Sequence record: OZ196212.1
Direction: 5' to 3' (one strand)
Length of the DNA stretch: 64,000 bases
Made by a program: the position numbers and the translations under genes. Below are positions 1 to 54,080 of this stretch, in pieces (the stretch's first letter is position 1; each line of letters starts with the position of its first letter). The notes beneath the pieces are model-generated. The model saw only the letters and a list, made by a program, of their open reading frames with translations, was not told the DNA's origin and did not search any database.

Positions 1-874
1 CCTGATCTTGATGCTTAGTGTTGCGCATAGCAGGTGCCATACGACTAGCAATAGTTTGCAAGTCAATTGGGATATCTAATGTACCAAGTGCGATACGAGC
101 AACGTCTGCCACTTCAGGCACACTATGATTCGCTGCGCCTTGCAAGCGTTCACGATATACACCGCGAGTTGCCGGGGTTAGAGCAGGCATCACCATTGGC
201 GTGTTCGGAACACGTTTCGCTGGTTTGTCTTCGATCCATTCAGCTTTCACTTCGTCGTGAAACTCTTCAAATCCCGGTACCATATCAGCCGTAACGATAA
301 TCGAGCGTGCAGTCGCGATGTCTGGTTCTTTAGACATTTGAGCAGCTAGAATATTGATAGTCTTTTCTTCAGACTCAAGTAGCTTATCGGTATTGTATCC
401 CGGTTTGTTGATAACGAAGAAGCTGAAATCTTCAGCCATTTCATGATCGCCAACGTTTAGAATCTTAGTTGTTTCACAGCCGTAGCGTAGTTTCTTGAAT
501 AGCGTTTTGATACGCATATCGAACATCTTGCCACTGCCTTTCTTTTGTACGCGCATTGATACAGCGTTTGCACGAACTTTCAGCATGAATTCTTGAACAA
601 GTTTAACCAACGTTTCTTGGAACTTTTGTTGATCACCCATATCACGAATAGTTAATCCGCCTTTTTTACCGCGCATTGCAGTAACAGTACAGAACCAAGC
701 GCGTTTAGTACGGTCGCCTAGCCCCGATTTTGTTTTACTTGTAAACGTGACAACGACATCTTTGGTCTCACCAGCCATATCGATGACAAAGTAACGATTG
801 ACTTTGGTCGAGCGAGCCGGGTAGTAGTTATAAGTTGAAGTTGCTGTCTCATTTAATTCTTGAAATCCAATCAT
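1..874 (-). CDS. Alt-like internal head protein, N-terminal part (runs off the window edge)
   Basis: Hand-translated open frame from ATG 874 to position 1, absent from the ORF track: MIGFQELNETATSTYNYYPARS...; LNE cleavage-like leader; loose resemblance to the T4 Alt N-terminal region; CATAAATA upstream. Catalytic domain not visible. Confidence 0.5.
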   Translation of the reverse strand, partial: MIGFQELNETATSTYNYYPARSTKVNRYFVIDMAGETKDVVVTFTSKTKSGLGDRTKRAWFCTVTAMRGKKGGLTIRDMGDQQKFQETLVKLVQEFMLKVRANAVSMRVQKKGSGKMFDMRIKTLFKKLRYGCETTKILNVGDHEMAEDFSFFVINKPGYNTDKLLESEEKTINILAAQMSKEPDIATARSIIVTADMVPGFEEFHDEVKAEWIEDKPAKRVPNTPMVMPALTPATRGVYRERLQGAANHSVPEVADVARIALGTLDIPIDLQTIASRMAPAMRNTKHQDQ

Positions 875-2493: not shown

Positions 2494-2514
2494 AGCCCCG
2501 AAAGGGGCTTTTTT
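2494..2514 (+). terminator. intrinsic terminator
   Basis: agcccc-GAAA-ggggct plus T6. Confidence 0.9.
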
Positions 2515-2520
2515 AGGTTT

Positions 2521-2597
2521 GAGCGGAATTATTCCGTCTCATCTTAGTAGTATTAGTGATCTTCGAGATATTCGAGTAATTAGGGGTATTAGTTTAG
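2521..2597. repeat. 9-bp-periodic cassette, copy 1
   Basis: ATTCCGTCTCATCTTAGTAG at 2531-2550 (identical at 46932-46951); TT(A/C)G at 2544, 2553, 2562, 2571, 2580, 2589. Confidence 0.9.
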
Positions 2598-2621
2598 AAC
2601 CACCGCGAATCGTCGTATAAT
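2593..2621 (+). promoter_or_regulatory. sigma70-like promoter, GTTTA class
   Basis: TTTAGA-17-TATAAT. Confidence 0.65.
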
Positions 2622-2639: not shown

Positions 2640-2882
2640 ATGATAACAATCTACACAATTCCTAACTGTGACGGTTGCCGACATGCAATCGCACTCTGTA
2701 AGTTCAAGAAAATCCCTTTCGAAGAAATATCCTTAGATTCTCAGTCTAAAATCGATGCACTTCACCAACGTCTTGGCGGCAATCGAAACATTCGAGTCCC
2801 GTTAGCTGTTGACTCTGACGACACGTATATCGGTCACTTACCAGAGCTTAAACAGTACGTTGATAGCAAGCTGTATAAATAG
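2640..2882 (+). CDS. glutaredoxin
   Basis: YTIPNCDGC (CxxC), VP motif, 80 aa. Confidence 0.85.
   Translation: MITIYTIPNCDGCRHAIALCKFKKIPFEEISLDSQSKIDALHQRLGGNRNIRVPLAVDSDDTYIGHLPELKQYVDSKLYK
2874..2881 (+). promoter_or_regulatory. T4 late promoter TATAAATA
   Basis: perfect consensus upstream of gp24-like gene. Confidence 0.85.
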
Positions 2883-3847: not shown

Positions 3848-4369
3848 ATGAAAACACATTATGTAGATAATAAAGCTCTATACGCATCGATTTGCGAATG
3901 GAAAGAAGAAATGAAGAACGCTGAAGAAGGCGTTTTCGTGCCAGTCCCTGATTTTGTGGCAGTTAGTATCATGAAAATCAGCGAGAACTTGACCCGTCGT
4001 TACAACTTTAGCAATTACACGCAGCCGTGGAAAGAAGAAATGGTTGGCGATGCGATTGAGCATTGCTTACGCTACGTGAAGAACTTCGACACTGAGCGAT
4101 TCAAAAACCCACACGCGTATATCACTCGTATCTGTTTCAATGCATTCGTGCAGCGTATCAAGAAAGAACGCCAAGATACAGCGATTAAATATAAAGTATT
4201 CTTGTCTGATTCGTCAAACTACACCGTTGAGGGTGAAGACGTTGATTTCGACTTCATGCAGCAAATGCTAGAACGCGTGAACTCATTCGACGAATCTCGC
4301 AAATCAAACAAATCTGAATCTGCCCCTAGCAAGAAAGACGATTCGAACTTACAAAAATTTTACGATTAA
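3848..4369 (+). CDS. 55: late-transcription sigma factor gp55
   Basis: HYVDNK, YNFSNYTQPWKEEM, KNPHAYIT..CFNAFVQRIKKE. Confidence 0.97.
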   Translation: MKTHYVDNKALYASICEWKEEMKNAEEGVFVPVPDFVAVSIMKISENLTRRYNFSNYTQPWKEEMVGDAIEHCLRYVKNFDTERFKNPHAYITRICFNAFVQRIKKERQDTAIKYKVFLSDSSNYTVEGEDVDFDFMQQMLERVNSFDESRKSNKSESAPSKKDDSNLQKFYD

Positions 4370-4378
4370 GGAATTAAC

Positions 4379-5815
4379 ATGTTAGGTACCTTTGACTCAT
4401 TTCTGAGTGAAAATCGCCGTCAAACTCAGGGTGGTAAAATCTACCCTAAGTTTGGTCAAGTATTTGTTGAGCTAGGCACAGCTTCTACCGACTTCAGCAA
4501 AGAAAAGGGCGTTGAAACAACTATCGGTATGATGGAAAAAGCGAATGAGCTTAAAACTATCATGCAAACTAAACTATTCGAAGACAGCAACGTTGACCAC
4601 ACTAAATTCGACATGAATCTAAGTGAAAACGTTTCAGTTATCAACTTGCTAATGGAAGAAGAATTCCTAGCATGTAAGCCGACTGAACTTGCGCAACTAA
4701 AGTCAATGACCACTGTGTCTGAAGCTCGTTTGCCAAGTCTTGTCGTGAAAGGCGGTGAACTTACGACTATCGTTAGCGAAGCAACTAAGCTTGGTTACAA
4801 AAAGTCTGATATTCACGTGATCTTCCCGATGGCTGAAATGAAAATCGAACTTGCTGACAGCGACAAGCTAGTGGTTGAAGCACTATCGTTTGATGGACGT
4901 ACAGCTACTGAAATTCTGGCAATGGGTTCTCGCATTCAACTTGGCGACGTTTACGTAGTGAGCGAGTCCGTTGAGTCGAACGCTGACGTGCTAGGTCTTG
5001 AAGAGATTCGCATCAATCGCATGACGCTTGGCGCTCTTAACCGTCACGTTATGAACTGCTTTGTTGTTAAAGAAGCGGCTGAAACGTCATACGCGCACGC
5101 TGCGGTTAAAGAAATCACTGATCGCCCTGCGCTATCAGGCTTCAAAGCATACGATTTGAAACCAAACGTGACTATGCTTGAACATGCACAAAACGCATTC
5201 TCAAAAGACATTGCTAAAGCTCCGCTTTCTGCAACTGCATGGGAAAAGCTTGTTGATGTGAAAGAAGTGTATTTCGACAATGGTTGGAAACTGAAGCACA
5301 ACAACACAAGTCTTGTTCTAACAAACGCTGAAAACGCTATGCGTCATGGTCGTGTTTGTGAAGAATATCGTGTTGAACTGTCTGAGGCAGGTTATCCGCT
5401 TCTTGATATGATCGCGATGATGGAACGCAATGAAGAAATTCGTTGGGACTGTGCTTCGTTTGCTAAACACATGATGAAATTCGACGGTGCTATCACCCCA
5501 GAACGTCAATCTGTGACAGCATTTACGACTGAATCAGCTTCTAATCGCGTATTCCACCCGCATGTGATGTCTGACCTACGTCCAGTTACTGAAGCGGCAG
5601 ACGACGTTGACAGCTTGATTCGTGCTATCGCGAATGATCAGTTCAGTTCATTCAAGATCAGTCAAGCATTCTCTGAGCAGATGCTAGACCAAGAAACGCT
5701 TTACTCTATGATGGAATCAATCGTTTCTGAAGGCATCGACGTTGACGCTGATGGTGATTTGATCACGTTCAAAGTGAACGCGACTCAGTACCACATTCAA
5801 CTAGATATTAAGTAG
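4379..5815 (+). CDS. hypothetical protein with internal-protein-like leader; possible degenerate P-loop fold
   Basis: MLGTFDSFLSE leader; IYPKFGQV and LGYKKSDIHV recall a phage P-loop kinase-like family, but no GxxxxGK. Confidence 0.6.
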   Translation: MLGTFDSFLSENRRQTQGGKIYPKFGQVFVELGTASTDFSKEKGVETTIGMMEKANELKTIMQTKLFEDSNVDHTKFDMNLSENVSVINLLMEEEFLACKPTELAQLKSMTTVSEARLPSLVVKGGELTTIVSEATKLGYKKSDIHVIFPMAEMKIELADSDKLVVEALSFDGRTATEILAMGSRIQLGDVYVVSESVESNADVLGLEEIRINRMTLGALNRHVMNCFVVKEAAETSYAHAAVKEITDRPALSGFKAYDLKPNVTMLEHAQNAFSKDIAKAPLSATAWEKLVDVKEVYFDNGWKLKHNNTSLVLTNAENAMRHGRVCEEYRVELSEAGYPLLDMIAMMERNEEIRWDCASFAKHMMKFDGAITPERQSVTAFTTESASNRVFHPHVMSDLRPVTEAADDVDSLIRAIANDQFSSFKISQAFSEQMLDQETLYSMMESIVSEGIDVDADGDLITFKVNATQYHIQLDIK

Positions 5816-5821
5816 GGTCAA

Positions 5822-6472
5822 ATGGCTAAATCATTAAACGATTTTCTGACTGAAGTTCAGAAATATAGCTCGGCAGCTACATCTATTCGCGGTAAAGAAG
5901 TTGCCGCGTTAGTTAAACTGTTCAAAGCGGGCATGTTTGTACCGGGTGGCACTGCGCTAGATTACGGTGCGGGTAAGTACGGTCGTAATGCTGAATACTT
6001 ACGTGGCGAGGGTGTTCGCACTTACGCATACGACAAGTTCAACGGTACATCGGCAGACGGTTGGGTTGACGTGAGTCTAACAATCCCAGCGGGTCAAATG
6101 TTCGATACGTCGTTCACGTCGTACGTTCTGAACGTAGTTCCACAAGAAGTCGAAGCTGAAATCATTCGCGAGATTGAATCACTTACGACTGGTAAAGTGT
6201 TCCACATTACACGTGGTTCTGACATCACTCAAACGGTATTCAACGTTATCAGTGGTAAGTCTAAGAACGCAGTGATGATGGAATTCCTTGAAACTGAGCA
6301 ACCAGATTTGTACGCTCAAGTTCAAGCAGGTGAAAACTTGAAAGCAGTAGCTAAAGAGATCGCGACTCGCGGTGTCGTTACAGCTAAAGACAGTTTCCAA
6401 CGCATTCCTGACCTTTCTCAGTACGGTTACAAACGTTCTGGTTCTGGTGCATCGATGGTGTGGACAAAATAA
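5822..6472 (+). CDS. class I SAM-dependent methyltransferase with internal-protein-like leader
   Basis: ALDYGAGK motif I, acidic YAYD, TSYVLNVV; MAKSLNDFLTE leader. Confidence 0.8.
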   Translation: MAKSLNDFLTEVQKYSSAATSIRGKEVAALVKLFKAGMFVPGGTALDYGAGKYGRNAEYLRGEGVRTYAYDKFNGTSADGWVDVSLTIPAGQMFDTSFTSYVLNVVPQEVEAEIIREIESLTTGKVFHITRGSDITQTVFNVISGKSKNAVMMEFLETEQPDLYAQVQAGENLKAVAKEIATRGVVTAKDSFQRIPDLSQYGYKRSGSGASMVWTK

Positions 6473-6488
6473 TTTCGATTATTTCAAT

Positions 6489-6543
6489 AAAAGGGTTGCT
6501 TCGGCAACCCTTTTTGCGTATTATAGCTATATCGAAACGAAAC
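6489..6543 (+). promoter_or_regulatory. combined terminator / early promoter
   Basis: aaaagggttgc-TTCG-gcaaccctttt; TTGCTT(6496)-17-TATTAT(6519); ATCGAAACGAAAC at 6531. Confidence 0.85.
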
Positions 6544-6603
6544 GACTGTTTAATACGTCATCAATCTGTTTTATACTATGAATCTACTTGAGAGAACAAT
6601 ATT

Positions 6604-7050
6604 ATGATCTATATTCAAACTAGCAACATCCTATCTGACGACACTCTTGGCTTTGCGCTTGGTGGTGCCCCTCGTCTCGATACTTTGCCAGAAAAAGAAC
6701 GCAATAATGTTCTTCTCAAAGCACTCGAAATCAAACTATATGAACGTCTGCCGTCAACTGCTGTATTCGATCATCTACTTCAAAACTCTATCCCGTTCAT
6801 CGCGATTCTGAGCGATATCGAAGAAATTGCTATGCAGCAATCGATTTGGTTCGAAGCAATTTCGAAGAACAAAGGTATCGATATCATGTACACTGCGATG
6901 TCTGACGTTGAACACAGCGAAGACACGATGCTAATTGCTGAAGATCGCGACGCTCTAATTCGTCAAGGTCAAGCAGGTGGTCGTATTCTACCATTTAGCA
7001 CAGAAACGCAGATGCCATTCATCATCGAGACGCTTAACTTACCTCAATAA
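6604..7050 (+). CDS. hypothetical protein
   Basis: ORF with RBS behind two promoters. Confidence 0.8.
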   Translation: MIYIQTSNILSDDTLGFALGGAPRLDTLPEKERNNVLLKALEIKLYERLPSTAVFDHLLQNSIPFIAILSDIEEIAMQQSIWFEAISKNKGIDIMYTAMSDVEHSEDTMLIAEDRDALIRQGQAGGRILPFSTETQMPFIIETLNLPQ

Positions 7051-25102: not shown

Positions 25103-26791
25103 ATGAAACTTAAACTTTTTGAGAATTTTTATCAAGAAGTGCGACTTGATGAGATTAGCGACCGCGCTAACATCGACATCGATTGGGATTTCGGTGACGA
25201 GAACGGTAGCACCGATTCGACTGCAAACTTCACCGCGGGTGGCGAGAAATTCGACGTTAGTGTTGATGAGAGCAATCCCGGGTACTTCACCGTAACGTTC
25301 CAAAACTCTGGCGGTTATTCGCAAACTGGTAAGCAAGGGCATGGCGCTGCTGCTGTTTTCTCTGGCGTATTGACGTGTTTACGTGAATTCACCGAGCATT
25401 ACGAATCAGTAATGGACAAGAAGCCGTATAGCTTTGACTTCTCTGCCGCGTATGAGCTACCACAGAATCACCCACAAGCACGTCTTGCAGGTCGTCGCCA
25501 AGAAGCGTTTGAACTTCCGCTTGATGAGAAGAAAAAGCTATTGAAAGACTTGATCAGTCGCCCGATGCTTTACTACTCTCTATCGCTGACGTTTGGTAAA
25601 GAACAAGGTTATTCTACGCATATGCATGACCGACTGTTGACTCATTTGGCAGGTAACGCCAACGATTTCCGTTCAGTTCGTAAGAACGTGACGCGCAATA
25701 TCGTAGCAATGGACGACGCTCAAGTTGACAAAGCACTGCGCGAAGCAAGTGGCTCAGTGTCGTTCACTCTAACGAATGATCATGAACGACCAAGCGACTA
25801 TGACTCACCATTTGGTCAAGCGTCACTTGAAGACCACATTGATGACGCGAGTCAATATGAAGTCGAAGAGTGGATTAACGAGGGTCGTGAAGACGAAATC
25901 ATTGAGCACGCAGACTGGCAGACGCTTGTTCGTATCGCTACGTGGGGTTTGATGCACGATGAGCTGATTTACCACGATGATTCAGACGTTCGTTGGGCTG
26001 TGGTTAAAGCAGATTACGAGTACGGTGATAAACTAGCCGAATCACCAGAATGGGAGCATCGTAAAGAAGCTGCTGAAAATGGCTTTATGATCTATCAACT
26101 TGTAGTCGATGACGACGAAGATGTTCGTGAAGCTGCATGGGATTGGGCGTTTGAAAGCGAAGACTCTGATCAACGCATTGAATATGCGAAGAACGTTGAC
26201 TCTACGCTTGGTCGCTCACATCTTGAAGACGTAATGGATCGCATGATTGACGACTCAGACGACTACGAAGACCATGTTTTTGTAGCTGAACACGGTTGGC
26301 GACTTGAAGAACTGGTCGACAACGGTGACGAAGATGTTCGTGAAGCTGCGATGAACTGGTACTTCAACAACGAAGATTCAACCGATGCGGTAAGCAACAT
26401 CATGAGTCACAGCGACGTGTTCGGTGACGAGAACTTGTCATACATCATGAACGGTAACTTCGGCCCATACGCTGAAGAAAAGGCGATTGAAATGGCGAAA
26501 GAAGCTGACTTAGATGTTTCTGAGTGGGTGACTGAAGCAACAATCACTGATTACACGCTGCATGATGAAGTAGACGAAGCAACTTCCGTAGATGTTGAGG
26601 TAATCGACTCTGATGGCAGTGAGTTTGAAGTCACAGTGACATACGAAGCTGACACGACGTACACAGTGAACGACACCACTCGCGGTAAAGTCGAGACATT
26701 CGACGAGTTCAGCGGTGTGTTTGAGTTCTTCAAAGACGAATATGGCATTGAGCTAGACGACCACAGTGAAGTCTACGATCATTTGACATAA
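25103..26791 (+). CDS. acidic protein with HEAT-like repeats and internal-protein-like leader
   Basis: MKLKLFENFYQEVRLDE leader; DEDVREAA twice. Confidence 0.8.
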   Translation: MKLKLFENFYQEVRLDEISDRANIDIDWDFGDENGSTDSTANFTAGGEKFDVSVDESNPGYFTVTFQNSGGYSQTGKQGHGAAAVFSGVLTCLREFTEHYESVMDKKPYSFDFSAAYELPQNHPQARLAGRRQEAFELPLDEKKKLLKDLISRPMLYYSLSLTFGKEQGYSTHMHDRLLTHLAGNANDFRSVRKNVTRNIVAMDDAQVDKALREASGSVSFTLTNDHERPSDYDSPFGQASLEDHIDDASQYEVEEWINEGREDEIIEHADWQTLVRIATWGLMHDELIYHDDSDVRWAVVKADYEYGDKLAESPEWEHRKEAAENGFMIYQLVVDDDEDVREAAWDWAFESEDSDQRIEYAKNVDSTLGRSHLEDVMDRMIDDSDDYEDHVFVAEHGWRLEELVDNGDEDVREAAMNWYFNNEDSTDAVSNIMSHSDVFGDENLSYIMNGNFGPYAEEKAIEMAKEADLDVSEWVTEATITDYTLHDEVDEATSVDVEVIDSDGSEFEVTVTYEADTTYTVNDTTRGKVETFDEFSGVFEFFKDEYGIELDDHSEVYDHLT

Positions 26792-37952: not shown

Positions 37953-39326
37953 ATGATCATTGAATACGTTATGTCTGCTACTGGTCACGCTCGACTAGGC
38001 GCAGCACATAAACTAATGGATAAGGTCGATACGACTTATCTTCGTGACATTCTGAACGCTGCACAGAATCAAGACGGTGTACACAAAATCAGTATGCTAT
38101 ACAACGCATACACTGAAAAGAAAGTTGGACATCAAATCAACGATCTCTTTGGCGATGCTGTGTACAAAGTTCACGTCGATTCTGGTGGTCTACAGATTGT
38201 CAACTTGGGTTTAGACAACACACCAGAGCTTCGTAAAGCAGTTTACGAGAATCAAGCAGAGTCCGGTGATATCGGCATGTGCTTTGATGAAATCCCGCTG
38301 CACAATGAAGCGAAAGGCGGTGGCGCTGCTCGTATCAACACGAAAGACAAAGTATTCATGACTGATTTAGCATATGATTACGGTGTCAAGACTGGTGAGA
38401 ACATTCGAGCACAGATCGAGACATACATCGAAACTGGCAGTAAGTGCAAACCATACATCATTCTTCAAGGTAACTCAGACGAAGACTTCTTGAACTTCAG
38501 TGACGGCATTATGTCGCAACTTGAAGGCGTTGAAGACTACATCGCGGGCTGTGCTGCTGCCGATACATGTATTGGTAATGGCGTTCGTGAGTCTATCGAC
38601 ATGATGAGCGTCATTCGTAAGCTGAATATTCCAGAAAAAGCTAAGAAATCAGTGCATATGCTTGGGGTTGGCTCTGTTAAGCGTCTATTACCCGCTGTTG
38701 CTCTTATTCGAAGCGGTTACTTTGGTGATGACTTTCATATCAGTTACGATTCGAGCACGCACACTGGTTGTTTGACGAATCGTGAGTACACGGACAAGCT
38801 TGGTCGACGCAAGAAGATCAGTGGTCACGGCATCATGAAAGGTGACGTTAAGCAGCGTTCACGTGAGCTTGATGACATGCTAGATGAAGTGTACGGTCGT
38901 TTCGGTCACGTGTTACCGCGTGAGAAAGAAGAGTTCAAAGAGTTCGCAACTCGCTTGTGGCTAAAAGAACTCGACAAAGAAACGATGACTGACGAAGATA
39001 TCGTGTTTGAAGTTGCGTGTAACTTGTGTATAATCTTATCTCAAGTGAACAACTTCCAAGCTATCATTTCTGAGACGTTTGATCTAAACACACCGAAAGT
39101 CGCTGACTTATCAGCATTCTTCGGTGGCACAGTTGAAGAGAAAGCACCGCAGAGTGGATTCATGCACTGGTCAAGCATTCGCAGACTAACAGTGCTTGAT
39201 AAGCTGCTTGATGTTGACACAATCGAAGAGTATGATCGCTGGCACGCGTCGTACGTTGATCGACTACCGTCGATGCGTATTCGTCGTGGCGTGACTGCTG
39301 ATTATCCAGATTTCAAAGTACAATAG
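37953..39326 (+). CDS. TGT-superfamily deazaguanine transglycosylase (DpdA/DpdA2-like)
   Basis: DSGGLQ, FDEIP, ILQG, HMLGVG, YDSS; no CxCxxC zinc motif. Confidence 0.8.
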   Translation: MIIEYVMSATGHARLGAAHKLMDKVDTTYLRDILNAAQNQDGVHKISMLYNAYTEKKVGHQINDLFGDAVYKVHVDSGGLQIVNLGLDNTPELRKAVYENQAESGDIGMCFDEIPLHNEAKGGGAARINTKDKVFMTDLAYDYGVKTGENIRAQIETYIETGSKCKPYIILQGNSDEDFLNFSDGIMSQLEGVEDYIAGCAAADTCIGNGVRESIDMMSVIRKLNIPEKAKKSVHMLGVGSVKRLLPAVALIRSGYFGDDFHISYDSSTHTGCLTNREYTDKLGRRKKISGHGIMKGDVKQRSRELDDMLDEVYGRFGHVLPREKEEFKEFATRLWLKELDKETMTDEDIVFEVACNLCIILSQVNNFQAIISETFDLNTPKVADLSAFFGGTVEEKAPQSGFMHWSSIRRLTVLDKLLDVDTIEEYDRWHASYVDRLPSMRIRRGVTADYPDFKVQ

Positions 39327-41941: not shown

Positions 41942-42140
41942 CGCATCACTCGGTGCGTTTGCTAGAGTCGGCACTGCAATTATTCACGTCAAATCTGGCG
42001 GCGAATATGTAGTATTGCACGTCGGCAAAGCGAAAGTAAACGGTGAGTGGGTAGAAGCGATTACGTACACGAATCAAAACGGTGAAGTATTCACACGAAC
42101 AGTCGATGACTTTCGTGGATTCGAATTAGCACTAATCTAA
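41934..42140 (+). CDS. DUF1653-like protein
   Basis: HVKSGGEY.V...Y.N..GEVFTR...F. Confidence 0.7.
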   Translation: MTNASLGAFARVGTAIIHVKSGGEYVVLHVGKAKVNGEWVEAITYTNQNGEVFTRTVDDFRGFELALI

Positions 42141-42155
42141 TGTGAGAAATATATA

Positions 42156-42362
42156 ATGGCTACAGACAAAGAACTTGTTGATGAAGTAAACGACTACTGG
42201 ATTGGTTGGGATGGTCGTGGTGACAATCCCGTTGAGTACGATCTGGAACACGGTCCCATGCGTAAGAAAATGCGTGACTTCATCGAACGCAAGAAAGTAA
42301 CTGACCAACGCACGGCTGAATTTGAAGAAGTGCGCAACAAATATAAAAGGCGTGAAAAATGA
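42156..42362 (+). CDS. hypothetical protein
   Basis: ORF. Confidence 0.7.
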   Translation: MATDKELVDEVNDYWIGWDGRGDNPVEYDLEHGPMRKKMRDFIERKKVTDQRTAEFEEVRNKYKRREK

Positions 42363-45718: not shown

Positions 45719-46312
45719 ATGAAAAAATTCAACGAGTTCGCGAAAGAACTGGAAGAAGCAGCAACTGACATCGTGTATCACGGTACGTCACTGAGTCGAG
45801 CTATTGAAATATTGTCTACTGACAAGTTCAGATTGAGTGATGCTAAAGGCAGTTGGTCAGATGACACAGACACTGAGATCAACCAGAAGCAAGGCAAAGA
45901 CAAGCGATACTACTTGTCAACTGCACGTAGTGCAACTAGCCCGTACATCAATGACCTAGACACGATGATTGACTCGACCACGGCTGACGTTCTCTTTGTC
46001 ATTGATGGTCGCAAGATTAGCCACAACCACAGAACGAAAGCAGTTGACTACGGTCGCGGTGAATATGCATCGGACTATGGTAATGAGCTTGAAGATCGCG
46101 TGTTCAGCAAAAAGCCAGTGATTGATAATGCCTCTAAGTACATCAAAGAAGCACACGTATGGAAGAAATTCTCTAGCAGTTCGTCACACGGCGAGTCGAT
46201 ACTAGAGAAGTTCCTATCTCAAGCAAAGAGAAAAGGGATTCGCGTGTGGGTGTATGATAATCAACGCGATTGGCAGTCTATGAACAAGAAAAGGGCTGTC
46301 TTCACTCAATAA
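45719..46312 (+). CDS. ADP-ribosyltransferase-fold protein with internal-protein-like leader
   Basis: VYHGTS, YLSTAR, NELEDR; MKKFNEFAKELEE leader. Confidence 0.65.
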   Translation: MKKFNEFAKELEEAATDIVYHGTSLSRAIEILSTDKFRLSDAKGSWSDDTDTEINQKQGKDKRYYLSTARSATSPYINDLDTMIDSTTADVLFVIDGRKISHNHRTKAVDYGRGEYASDYGNELEDRVFSKKPVIDNASKYIKEAHVWKKFSSSSSHGESILEKFLSQAKRKGIRVWVYDNQRDWQSMNKKRAVFTQ

Positions 46313-53519: not shown

Positions 53520-54080
53520 CTATTTCTTTTTAGCTGCAAGCGTTTTTGCACGCTTAGTTGCTGTTGATATAGCTTTTAGTTCTTTTTCCATCTTGGCTAA
53601 GTCGCTGACAAACTTCTCTGAGTTCTTGATGTCGCTACGCAGTGCGCCTTTCGATGTCGCGATGTCTAAATCGCTATTCAAGCTCGTACGAAGCTTGTGA
53701 GTCAAGAATGTCGCACGCTCGATGTCTTGCTCGAACTTAGCTACTTTCTTCGGCGTCACTTCAGTGTCTTTGCTTACCGATTGGTACTTTTCAATGCGCT
53801 TCATTAGCTTTTTCAGCTCTTTGTAGTCTTTACGTGCTTGACCGCCTGCGAACAACGCGCCACCAATCAAACCATTGATGCCCATACTAATTGCGCCCCA
53901 CGTTGCCAATGGAATTGCAAGAGCAAGACCGCCAGTAGCTGCACCTGCACCTGCTGCACCAAGAGCACCAATTGTTGCACCTGCAACTGCACCGGTAGCT
54001 GCTGCTCGTTTAGCCCATTGGCTGATTGTTGCCTCATCGAGTGGTTTTACTTCGAACTCGTCGAATGTTTTTAATTCCAT
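53520..54080 (-). CDS. glycine-zipper membrane-type protein with internal-protein-like leader
   Basis: MELKTFDEFEVKPLDE leader; long Gly/Ala hydrophobic segment; basic tail. Confidence 0.8.
   Translation of the reverse strand: MELKTFDEFEVKPLDEATISQWAKRAAATGAVAGATIGALGAAGAGAATGGLALAIPLATWGAISMGINGLIGGALFAGGQARKDYKELKKLMKRIEKYQSVSKDTEVTPKKVAKFEQDIERATFLTHKLRTSLNSDLDIATSKGALRSDIKNSEKFVSDLAKMEKELKAISTATKRAKTLAAKKK

Follow-up and report, generated by a model that had tools for sequence, protein, structure and literature searches.

Why would a T4-type phage carry a predicted methyltransferase at the end of a late transcription unit, and why would the product begin with a leader of the kind that directs proteins into the phage head? 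The question is raised by P0001, a gene located at positions 5822-6472(+) of a 64,000-nucleotide stretch of OZ196212.1, referred to here as the window (window position = record position - 62,000). The source, Vibrio phage D527, is a T4-type myovirus of the KVP40-like kind (Schizotequatrovirus), and window positions 4379-7050 are 100% identical to its record and ~77% identical to KVP40. The reading frame of P0001 is open throughout, and its product is 80% identical to KVP40.0066, a member of phrog_14016 (function unknown). The gene is a core gene, present in 49 of the 49 matching Schizotequatrovirus records. Its orthologues are annotated as hypothetical in 48 of these and as "SAM-dependent methyltransferase" in the remaining one, where SAM is S-adenosylmethionine.

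The T4 internal-protein pathway is the textbook case of protein delivery with DNA, and its natural cargo consists of a few small proteins and Alt. The analysis described here identifies P0001 as a probable new cargo of this known delivery system, namely an uncharacterised phage-borne class I methyltransferase (MTase) that carries a T4-type leader and is present in virus particles. The same tag as that of T4 is attached to an enzyme of an uncharacterised family that was found in this analysis on phage or viral DNA only.

The capsid-targeting-like leader

The first 11 residues of P0001, MAKSLNDFLTE, resemble the capsid-targeting sequences (CTS) of the T4 internal proteins (IPs), which are MKTYQEFIAE in IPII and IPIII and MKTFKEF in IPI. 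Phage D527 has IP-like leaders of its own, MKTLQEFLAE and MKTLAEFLGE, in two small proteins of the tRNA cluster, where T4 has ipI. A scoring matrix based on BLOSUM62 was constructed only from T4 IPI, IPII and IPIII and the two IP-like leaders of D527 (four leaders), and it was applied to the D527 genome of 254,106 bp, which had been reassembled from pieces of the record and the window with zero mismatches in the overlaps. Among the 5,606 candidate starts in these 254 kb, that of P0001 ranks 4th (z = 5.0), and that of the 478-residue open reading frame (ORF) immediately upstream, MLGTFDSFLSE, ranks 7th (z = 4.4). Within the 64-kb window, a search with a strict leader pattern retrieved only P0001 and this adjacent upstream ORF, and the leader of P0001 is not regarded as a match by chance.

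In T4 IPIII, residues 1-10 suffice for packaging, with residues 4 and 7 being important for targeting and residues 8 and 10 for processing (PMC9026906). At the corresponding positions P0001 has L, F, L and E, with one extra residue after the initiator Met. As can be seen, hydrophobic or aromatic residues occupy positions 4 and 7, and a putative L-T-E protease site is formed by residues 9-11. The KVP40 orthologue has F at both of the targeting positions, 4 and 7. Across eight KVP40-group orthologues the four functional positions are occupied by L/F, F/Y, L and E, respectively, and positions 3, 5, 6 and 9 vary. Such a distribution of fixed and variable positions is what a functional CTS that contains an (L/I)-x-E protease site should show, and the conservation of the four functional positions argues for selection on packaging. 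Both the rank of the start and the match at these positions bear out the capsid-targeting-like leader that had been proposed in an earlier reading of the sequence (the original prediction). Cleavage after E11 would leave a predicted mature N-terminus, from V12 on, that reads VQKYSSAATSIR. An E-to-D replacement at the equivalent residue in T4 prevents processing and leaves targeting intact. In the annotation of OZ196212.1, a head maturation protease and scaffolding proteins are located beside the portal and the major head protein.

The leader is also found in a second subfamily of the MTase, in T4-like contexts, with the sequences MKSFSEFITE and MKQFSEFLSE. It is lineage-specific and is missing from the copies in three complete non-T4 phages. 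In a metagenomic phage that is KVP40-like and has conserved synteny (L038:4001-4615(+)), the MTase is leaderless, and its start, which overlaps the upstream stop codon, is the equivalent of residue 12. Since the L038 variant begins at that residue, the leader can be regarded as a separable module whose boundary falls at the predicted cleavage site.

Presence in virus particles

Particles of phage 6E351A, precipitated with polyethylene glycol (PEG), have been analysed by mass spectrometry (ISME J 2025, PMC12028318). A search with tblastn revealed that 6E351A encodes a protein 100% identical to P0001 (MYOV011v1_p0106, QZI87378.1, VP6E351A_0103). Virion proteomics had been named in the original prediction as a check, and the published proteome does detect the identical protein. 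Indeed, Table S4 of PMC12028318 lists VP6E351A_0103 as a hypothetical protein of 24 kDa with 31 and 79 spectral counts. The article names no methyltransferase. By mean count VP6E351A_0103 ranks 22nd of 94, and its abundance corresponds to 0.255 counts per residue. Values for the structural comparators are 0.315 for the Alt-like protein, 0.393 for the gp24-like protein and 0.432 for the portal, whereas those for the cytoplasmic comparators, namely single-stranded DNA-binding protein (SSB), dUTPase, NAMPT and GTP cyclohydrolase, are 0.01-0.05. The counts for the 6E351A orthologues of the gp24-like and Alt-like proteins are 90/145 and 122/233, respectively (Table S4). Both gp55 and the 478-residue protein, which share a transcript with the MTase, are absent from the 6E351A particle list (Table S4), and mere carry-over of operon products is therefore unlikely.

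Six of the seven top-scoring leader genes appear in the particle list (_0394, _0391, _0380, _0103, _0188 and _0174; hypergeometric P ~5e-4). Without the two genes from which the matrix was derived, four of five top leader genes are detected (P ~8e-3). The lower-ranked leader-like proteins _0134, _0357 and _0019 were likewise detected in particles.

The 478-residue neighbour has a pI of 4.9, occurs only in KVP40-like phages, and has no Pfam, NCBIfam or atlas match. The conservation of its N-terminus runs far past residue 11, and in one orthologue the E is replaced by A. For these reasons, and because the protein is undetected in particles, its start is unsupported as a CTS.

Fold, motifs and family of the methyltransferase

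A word search yielded 58 relatives of P0001, mainly metagenomic, many of which match Methyltransf_23. An alignment of 48 family sequences, designated A1, reveals invariant residues at L46, D47, G49, A50, G51, R55, D71, P89, L103, N104, V105, H128, R131, G184, Q193 and R194. The motifs LDYGAGK, YAYD and SYVLNVV, which had been singled out in the original prediction, are present at residues 46-52, 68-71 and 100-106, respectively. Its statement that DPPY and NPPY motifs are lacking is confirmed as well, in that a scan of the 216 residues for [DNS]PP[YFWH] gave no match. The 216-residue sequence also contains no cysteine.

The AlphaFold model calculated with A1 has a predicted local distance difference test score (pLDDT) of 90.7 and a predicted template-modelling score (pTM) of 0.85, with residues 1-5 and 13-20 below 50 in pLDDT. 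It displays the Rossmann-like α/β fold, with a central sheet, of the class I SAM-dependent MTases, and both the glycine-rich motif I and the acidic residue that ends strand 2 are invariant in the 48 sequences. With the motifs intact and the modelled fold of the expected class, P0001 is predicted to bind SAM and to transfer its methyl group. The closest structural neighbours of the model are Htm, toxoflavin MTase, TehB and TPMT, which are small-molecule enzymes and not DNA methylases. A Foldseek search against the Protein Data Bank (PDB) returned class I MTases only, all at low identity, with TaqI a weak match at rank 50.

Against Methyltransf_23 (PF13489), P0001 alone scores 12.8 bits versus a cutoff of 27, and 40 of the 48 members match with E <= 0.01 (best 6.6e-11). 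Matches to TehB and to Methyltransf_11 were obtained for 10 and nine of the A1 members, respectively. The best solved sequence relative is TehB, over ~40 residues of the motif I-II region only (E 0.004). TehB, TPMT, Htm and the halide methyltransferases are likewise small single-domain class I MTases from the Methyltransf_23/Methyltransf_11 neighbourhood. In contrast to them, P0001 scores far under every family cutoff (for TehB, 13.9 bits versus 218), and its family has features of its own in the invariant residues H128, R131, Q193 and R194 and in an N-terminal TSI motif. A likeness to the methyltransferase of DNA phosphorothioation (dnd) loci had also been suggested. The similarity is real over the SAM-binding region, where TIGR04096 matches two family members through motifs I-IV (E ~1e-6, model positions 14-87 of 478). 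It is shallow, however, at 27 bits versus a cutoff of 150, and P0001 itself has no match at E < 0.1, such that membership in that family does not hold. No dnd genes are found among the annotations of the D527 record.

The atlas neighbours of P0001 are viral clusters. A signature-motif scan of 185,579 species-representative cellular genomes revealed no relative, although divergent ones could escape a search that is pattern-based. The family is mildly basic, with a median pI of 8.3.

The transcription unit and its signals

The features of the locus are provided in Table 1. Gaps of 6-10 nucleotides separate nrdH, the gene 24 homologue, gene 55, the 478-residue ORF and the MTase gene. Both KVP40 and the distant phage 1.081.O have the TATAAATA box in the equivalent position. 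The terminator that follows the MTase gene is kept in KVP40, and in 1.081.O its stem is altered yet still pairs. Note that this hairpin was read from the sequence, the automatic terminator scan having overlooked it. With the box upstream and the terminator downstream both conserved, the MTase is assigned as the last gene of a late-promoted unit, and the conserved consensus match predicts late transcription of that unit. The position claimed for it in the original prediction, last in the late operon, holds on the basis of the box, the tight packing and the hairpin after the stop codon, but this does not imply that expression is late only.

Table 1 Features at and around the MTase gene of phage D527 (window positions).
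Feature	Position	Strand	Remarks
C-terminal part of Alt-like ADP-ribosyltransferase	2..874	-	Gene extends beyond the window; OZ196212.1 annotation; N-terminus MIGFQELNE with L-x-E
Terminator hairpin upstream of nrdH element	2494-2509	+	Followed by TTAG repeats, 9-bp period
Pre-late promoter-like element GTTTAAC/GTTTAGA-N17-TATAAT	2594..2621	+	Upstream of nrdH; consensus scan
T4-type late promoter box TATAAATA	2874..2881	+	Exact match; 58 nucleotides upstream of gene 24 homologue
gp24-like head vertex protein, 299 residues	2940..3839	+	Pfam Gp23 E 9e-43; KVP40 annotation gene 24; first late gene of unit
gp55 late sigma factor	3848..4369	+	phrog_234 E 2e-57; weak Sigma70_r2 match; KVP40 annotation gene 55
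478-residue acidic protein	4379..5815	+	KVP40.0065 homologue; phrog_14490; N-terminus MLGTFDSFLSE
MTase P0001, 216 residues	5822..6472	+	Class I SAM-dependent methyltransferase; KVP40.0066 homologue; phrog_14016
Leader MAKSLNDFLTE, residues 1-11	5822..5854	+	T4-CTS-like; predicted prohead-protease cut after E11 (L-T-E)
Motif I LDYGAGK, residues 46-52	5957..5977	+	SAM-binding glycine loop; L46, D47, G49, A50 and G51 invariant in A1
Motif II YAYD, residues 68-71	6023..6034	+	Invariant acidic D71 ending strand 2
Motif IV region SYVLNVVP, residues 100-107	6119..6142	+	Family signature; L103, N104 and V105 invariant; also in polyvalent-protein modules
Intrinsic terminator	6489..6515	+	11-bp G+C-rich stem, TTCG loop, T-run; 17 nucleotides past MTase stop codon

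The arrangement of hairpin, TTAG repeats and GTTTAAC-N17-TATAAT at positions 2494-2621 is kept in both KVP40 and 1.081.O, and the element at 2594-2621 may function as a pre-late promoter. No terminator was found between this element and the MTase gene. It is known that gp55 is needed before late promoters can work. Given that the unit includes gene 55, that the promoter-like element is conserved and that no terminator intervenes, the MTase is probably transcribed before late times too, by way of the element upstream of nrdH.

Upstream of the distant homologues the search for late promoters gave a mixed result, and the leader-bearing copy in L017 has none within 160 nucleotides. In a 317-kb T4-like phage (L024, 9900-9970(+)), a leaderless family member is directly preceded by a sigma-70-type promoter, TTGACA-17-TATACT, and by a TATAAATA box, which suggests that it is expressed early as well as late. 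Across 26 loci there were no recurrent neighbours except for a SprT-like gene in four. A conserved 220-residue partner upstream of distant homologues was considered and rejected, in that neither of the two 220-residue proteins is related to the other or to the 478-residue protein. Linkage of the family to RNA ligase genes proved to be inconsistent across lineages.

Related modules in polyvalent and head-region proteins

In two of the 23 viral loci examined, L033 and L036, the MTase module is contained within a large protein. The first of these (L033:7757-14578(+)) is a 2,273-residue ORF in which the MTase domain is followed by an ART-PolyVal domain (E 3.6e-35), ART referring to ADP-ribosyltransferase. 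The second (L036:8414-10462(+)) is a 682-residue ORF with a weak match to LPD23 and an MTase domain, and it is positioned after the terminase, directly between a P22-type portal gene (E 2e-117) and the genes for scaffold and coat. When compared with A1 by hhalign, the two modules gave probabilities of 97.3-97.7% (E ~1e-11), and they have LDYGAGK and VLNVVP(E/D) in common with P0001. For polyvalent proteins, delivery along with the DNA has been predicted (Iyer et al. 2017, PMC5512222). The MTase described in that report is of another type, an NPP(Y/F) adenine DNA methylase, and the P0001-type module is undescribed there. P0001 itself consists of a single domain and is not a polyvalent protein; only the L033 and L036 homologues sit in such proteins. 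In D527 the analogous pair is unfused, with the Alt-like ART and P0001 as separate proteins, both of them in particles as judged from the 6E351A orthologues.

Comparison with the T4 head proteins

P0001 resembles the T4 internal proteins with respect to the leader of ~10 residues, for which the pattern is MK-(T/S)-hydrophobic-x-(E/D)-F-(I/L)-x-E and the match is at positions 4, 7, 8 and 10. Like them, it has a late promoter, is found in particles and is encoded in a genome that contains a prohead protease gene. The T4 internal proteins, however, are small and mostly basic non-enzymes, and the enzyme family of P0001 is not among the T4 head proteins. The D527 leader also differs by its extra residue after the initiator Met, and cleavage and ejection are here presumed by analogy. 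The other T4 protein to be compared is Alt, which, like P0001, is an enzyme of the host-modifying type in the head of a T4-like phage and has a short N-terminal propeptide ending in L-x-E. Phage D527 encodes an Alt-like protein of its own, ~3.5 kb from the MTase gene and of similar abundance per residue in particles. The two enzymes differ in that Alt transfers ADP-ribosyl from NAD and P0001 would transfer methyl from SAM, and their folds are unrelated.

Evaluation of the proposed function

Taken together, these observations make it reasonably probable that P0001 is an active class I SAM-dependent MTase that travels as cargo of the T4-type internal-protein pathway and is delivered into the host. 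For the injected enzyme of the original prediction, the MTase fold, the CTS-like leader, the identical protein in particles and the related polyvalent modules all speak in its favour; the leader dependence of packaging, the cleavage at E11, the ejection and the class of target are the parts that we infer. Several points weigh against this reading. The 6E351A particles were PEG-precipitated and not gradient-purified, and some cytoplasmic enzymes are listed at low counts. The 478-residue neighbour, with a similar N-terminus, went undetected, and a leader-like sequence alone is therefore no guarantee of packaging. The L024 phage, although T4-like, carries its family member without a leader. In light of the pre-late promoter-like element and the leaderless orthologue, the enzyme need not be delivered to work. 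Finally, cleavage at E11 and ejection into the host are predicted steps, and the structural neighbours of P0001 form a continuum from which none stands out.

The alternatives in which P0001 acts on DNA are improbable. The original prediction had offered, as the alternative to injection, a late enzyme for the methylation of a 7-deazaguanine derivative; in phage DNA this would be dPreQ1, which would yield mdPreQ1, or another such base. The DNA of 6E351A does contain dPreQ1, at 15% of dG (PMC12028318), traces of mdPreQ1 occur in the relatives phi-Grn1 and phi-ST2 (PMC10516641), and the MTase unit has a late promoter box. This explanation is nevertheless disfavoured and appears very improbable. 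The mdPreQ1 of this phage group has been assigned to DpdM, known from phiSM and VH7D, and the VH7D enzyme made mdPreQ1 in Escherichia coli (PMC10516641). DpdM is likewise a methyltransferase of this phage group that acts late on phage DNA, but it is a Cys-rich protein with the DUF3109 fold and two Cys-based metal sites (PMC10516641), whereas P0001 has a Rossmann fold and is Cys-free. P0001 is a core gene of all 49 records and has an orthologue in nt-1, a phage for which the published assay revealed no insertion of preQ1 by DpdA2 (PMC10516641). QueC is absent from four complete phage records with family members (the VH7D positive control gave E 9e-54), and P0001 has neither a target-recognition domain nor a (D/N/S)PP(Y/F) motif. 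Profile searches with PF11307 (DpdM) and PF01702 (DpdA) missed the VH7D positive control and are thus uninformative. It is also quite unlikely that P0001, once packaged and injected, modifies the incoming phage DNA in cis, in the manner of P1 DarB, and so protects it against restriction. Injected DNA methylases are known from phage P1 and from polyvalent proteins (PMC5512222), P0001 is in the head beside the DNA, and TaqI is among its weak Foldseek matches. Proteins of the DarB type, however, are EcoKI/TaqI-like N6-adenine NPP(Y/F) MTases fused to a helicase, and the polyvalent DNA MTases of the EcoKI/TaqI type belong to another family, whereas P0001 has a single domain with a CTS. The 216-residue protein, ~205 residues in its mature form, lacks the NPP(Y/F)/DPPY sequence of motif IV that marks the DNA amino-MTases and the catalytic Cys of the PC motif that marks the C5-cytosine MTases, as well as a target-recognition domain and a helicase partner, and its top structural neighbours are small-molecule MTases.

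There is a small chance that P0001, packaged or not, is an RNA methyltransferase that modifies a tRNA or rRNA base in connection with phage RNA repair or takeover of translation. An RNA ligase gene lies within 10 kb of the MTase gene in four of nine lineages, which is weak evidence for RNA at best, and on the P0016 contig the MTase is clustered with a T4 Rnl1-type RNA ligase, a TROVE (Ro-like) protein and a Thg1-like enzyme in what resembles an RNA-repair neighbourhood. In three lineages, however, the nearest RNA ligase is 38-70 kb away, and in two complete MTase-bearing genomes there is none. Moreover, P0001 has no RNA-binding domain, the pI of the family is only mildly basic, and the atlas names are automatic. 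We consider it equally unlikely that the enzyme works only in the producing cell or in the assembling prohead, for example by methylating head or internal proteins, with its presence in particles a by-product and no role after ejection. Co-transcription with the vertex gene 24, the availability of SAM in that cell, the pre-late promoter-like element and the existence of a leaderless orthologue would all fit such an enzyme. Against it are the conserved functional positions of the leader, the fusion of homologous modules to an ART effector in polyvalent proteins that are predicted to act after delivery, and an abundance that resembles that of the Alt-like enzyme. As for the possibility that P0001 is an abundant late cytoplasmic protein that was carried over into the virion preparation and that the leader likeness is coincidental, its chances are very slight. 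The particles were prepared with PEG only, and SSB, dUTPase, thymidylate synthase and ligase are on the list, but P0001 exceeds the contaminant enzymes 5-25-fold in counts per residue, the co-transcribed gp55 and 478-residue protein were not detected, and the leader score independently predicts detection at the P values given above.

Proposed mechanism and substrate

If P0001 is indeed a delivered enzyme, the following sequence of events can be envisioned. Late in infection, the unit comprising gene 24, gene 55, the 0065 homologue and the MTase gene would be transcribed from the TATAAATA promoter. The 11-residue leader would dock the MTase onto the prohead scaffolding core, and a gp21-type prohead protease would then cut after L-T-E11 to leave an enzyme of ~22 kDa inside the head. 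In the next infection, the enzyme would exit the head together with the DNA and, with SAM supplied by the host, methylate a host-cell target before phage genes are expressed. MTase copies produced from the upstream pre-late promoter may carry this activity on.

DNA is probably not the target. Judging from the fold and the motifs, the methyl group would instead go to a small nucleophile or nucleotide, to the side chain of a protein or to a base in RNA. C5-pyrimidine chemistry is excluded by the lack of cysteine, and the absence of (D/N/S)PP(Y/F) disfavours methylation of exocyclic amines in nucleic acids or of glutamine. On the basis of the fold neighbours, the pocket formed after strands 5-7 by the invariant residues H128, R131, Q193 and R194 would suit a small or anionic substrate. 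Provided that the enzyme is active, a small molecule or nucleotide is a possible substrate and a protein an equally possible one, RNA is slightly less likely than either, and DNA is doubtful. In a more specific proposal, which is speculative and on the whole rather unlikely, the ejected MTase methylates, within the first seconds of infection, either a small-molecule or nucleotide signal of the host or a protein of its defence, transcription or translation, and thereby disarms or rewires the host. According to this proposal, independent recruitment would have brought the module into CTS-tagged proteins of T4-like phages and into polyvalent proteins of other phages, where it is paired with ADP-ribosyltransferases.

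If true, this would represent a methylation-based injected effector, and P0001 is a specific and experimentally accessible candidate for a new form of early host modification. Through this one enzyme module, CTS tagging and polyvalent fusion become linked as strategies of delivery. In addition, the head cargo of the Schizotequatroviruses, phages that are under development against Vibrio in aquaculture, can be predicted from a simple leader score.

Other proteins of D527 with leader-like starts

Several other D527 proteins with leader-like starts have orthologues in the 6E351A particles. Fifth by leader score is a 186-residue protein, MELKTFDEFEV...LDE, which is encoded at window positions 53520-54080(-) and belongs to no confident family; 7/21 counts were recorded for its orthologue, _0188. 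Ranked 6th is a 197-residue protein at 45719-46312(+) that starts with MKKFNEFAKELEE and has no confident Pfam match (orthologue _0174, 12/17 counts). A 562-residue protein at 25103-26791(+), which starts with MKLKLFENFYQEVRLDE and has no Pfam match, corresponds to the abundant _0134 (58/109 counts).

Three proteins of 74-82 residues are encoded in or beside the tRNA cluster at L007:42912-43160(-), 41962-42186(-) and 38361-38585(-), which are positions 214912-215160, 213962-214186 and 210361-210585 of the D527 record. Two of them have the near-canonical T4 leaders MKTLQEFLAE and MKTLAEFLGE, the orthologues of all three are in particles, and they are likely the IP equivalents of D527. Finally, a 367-residue protein at L007:18614-19717(+), which starts with MKKLNTFMEELQALNE and whose orthologue _0357 has 18/4 counts, displays a weak match to the PARP catalytic domain (E 0.007, below cutoff) and is possibly another packaged ART-like enzyme.

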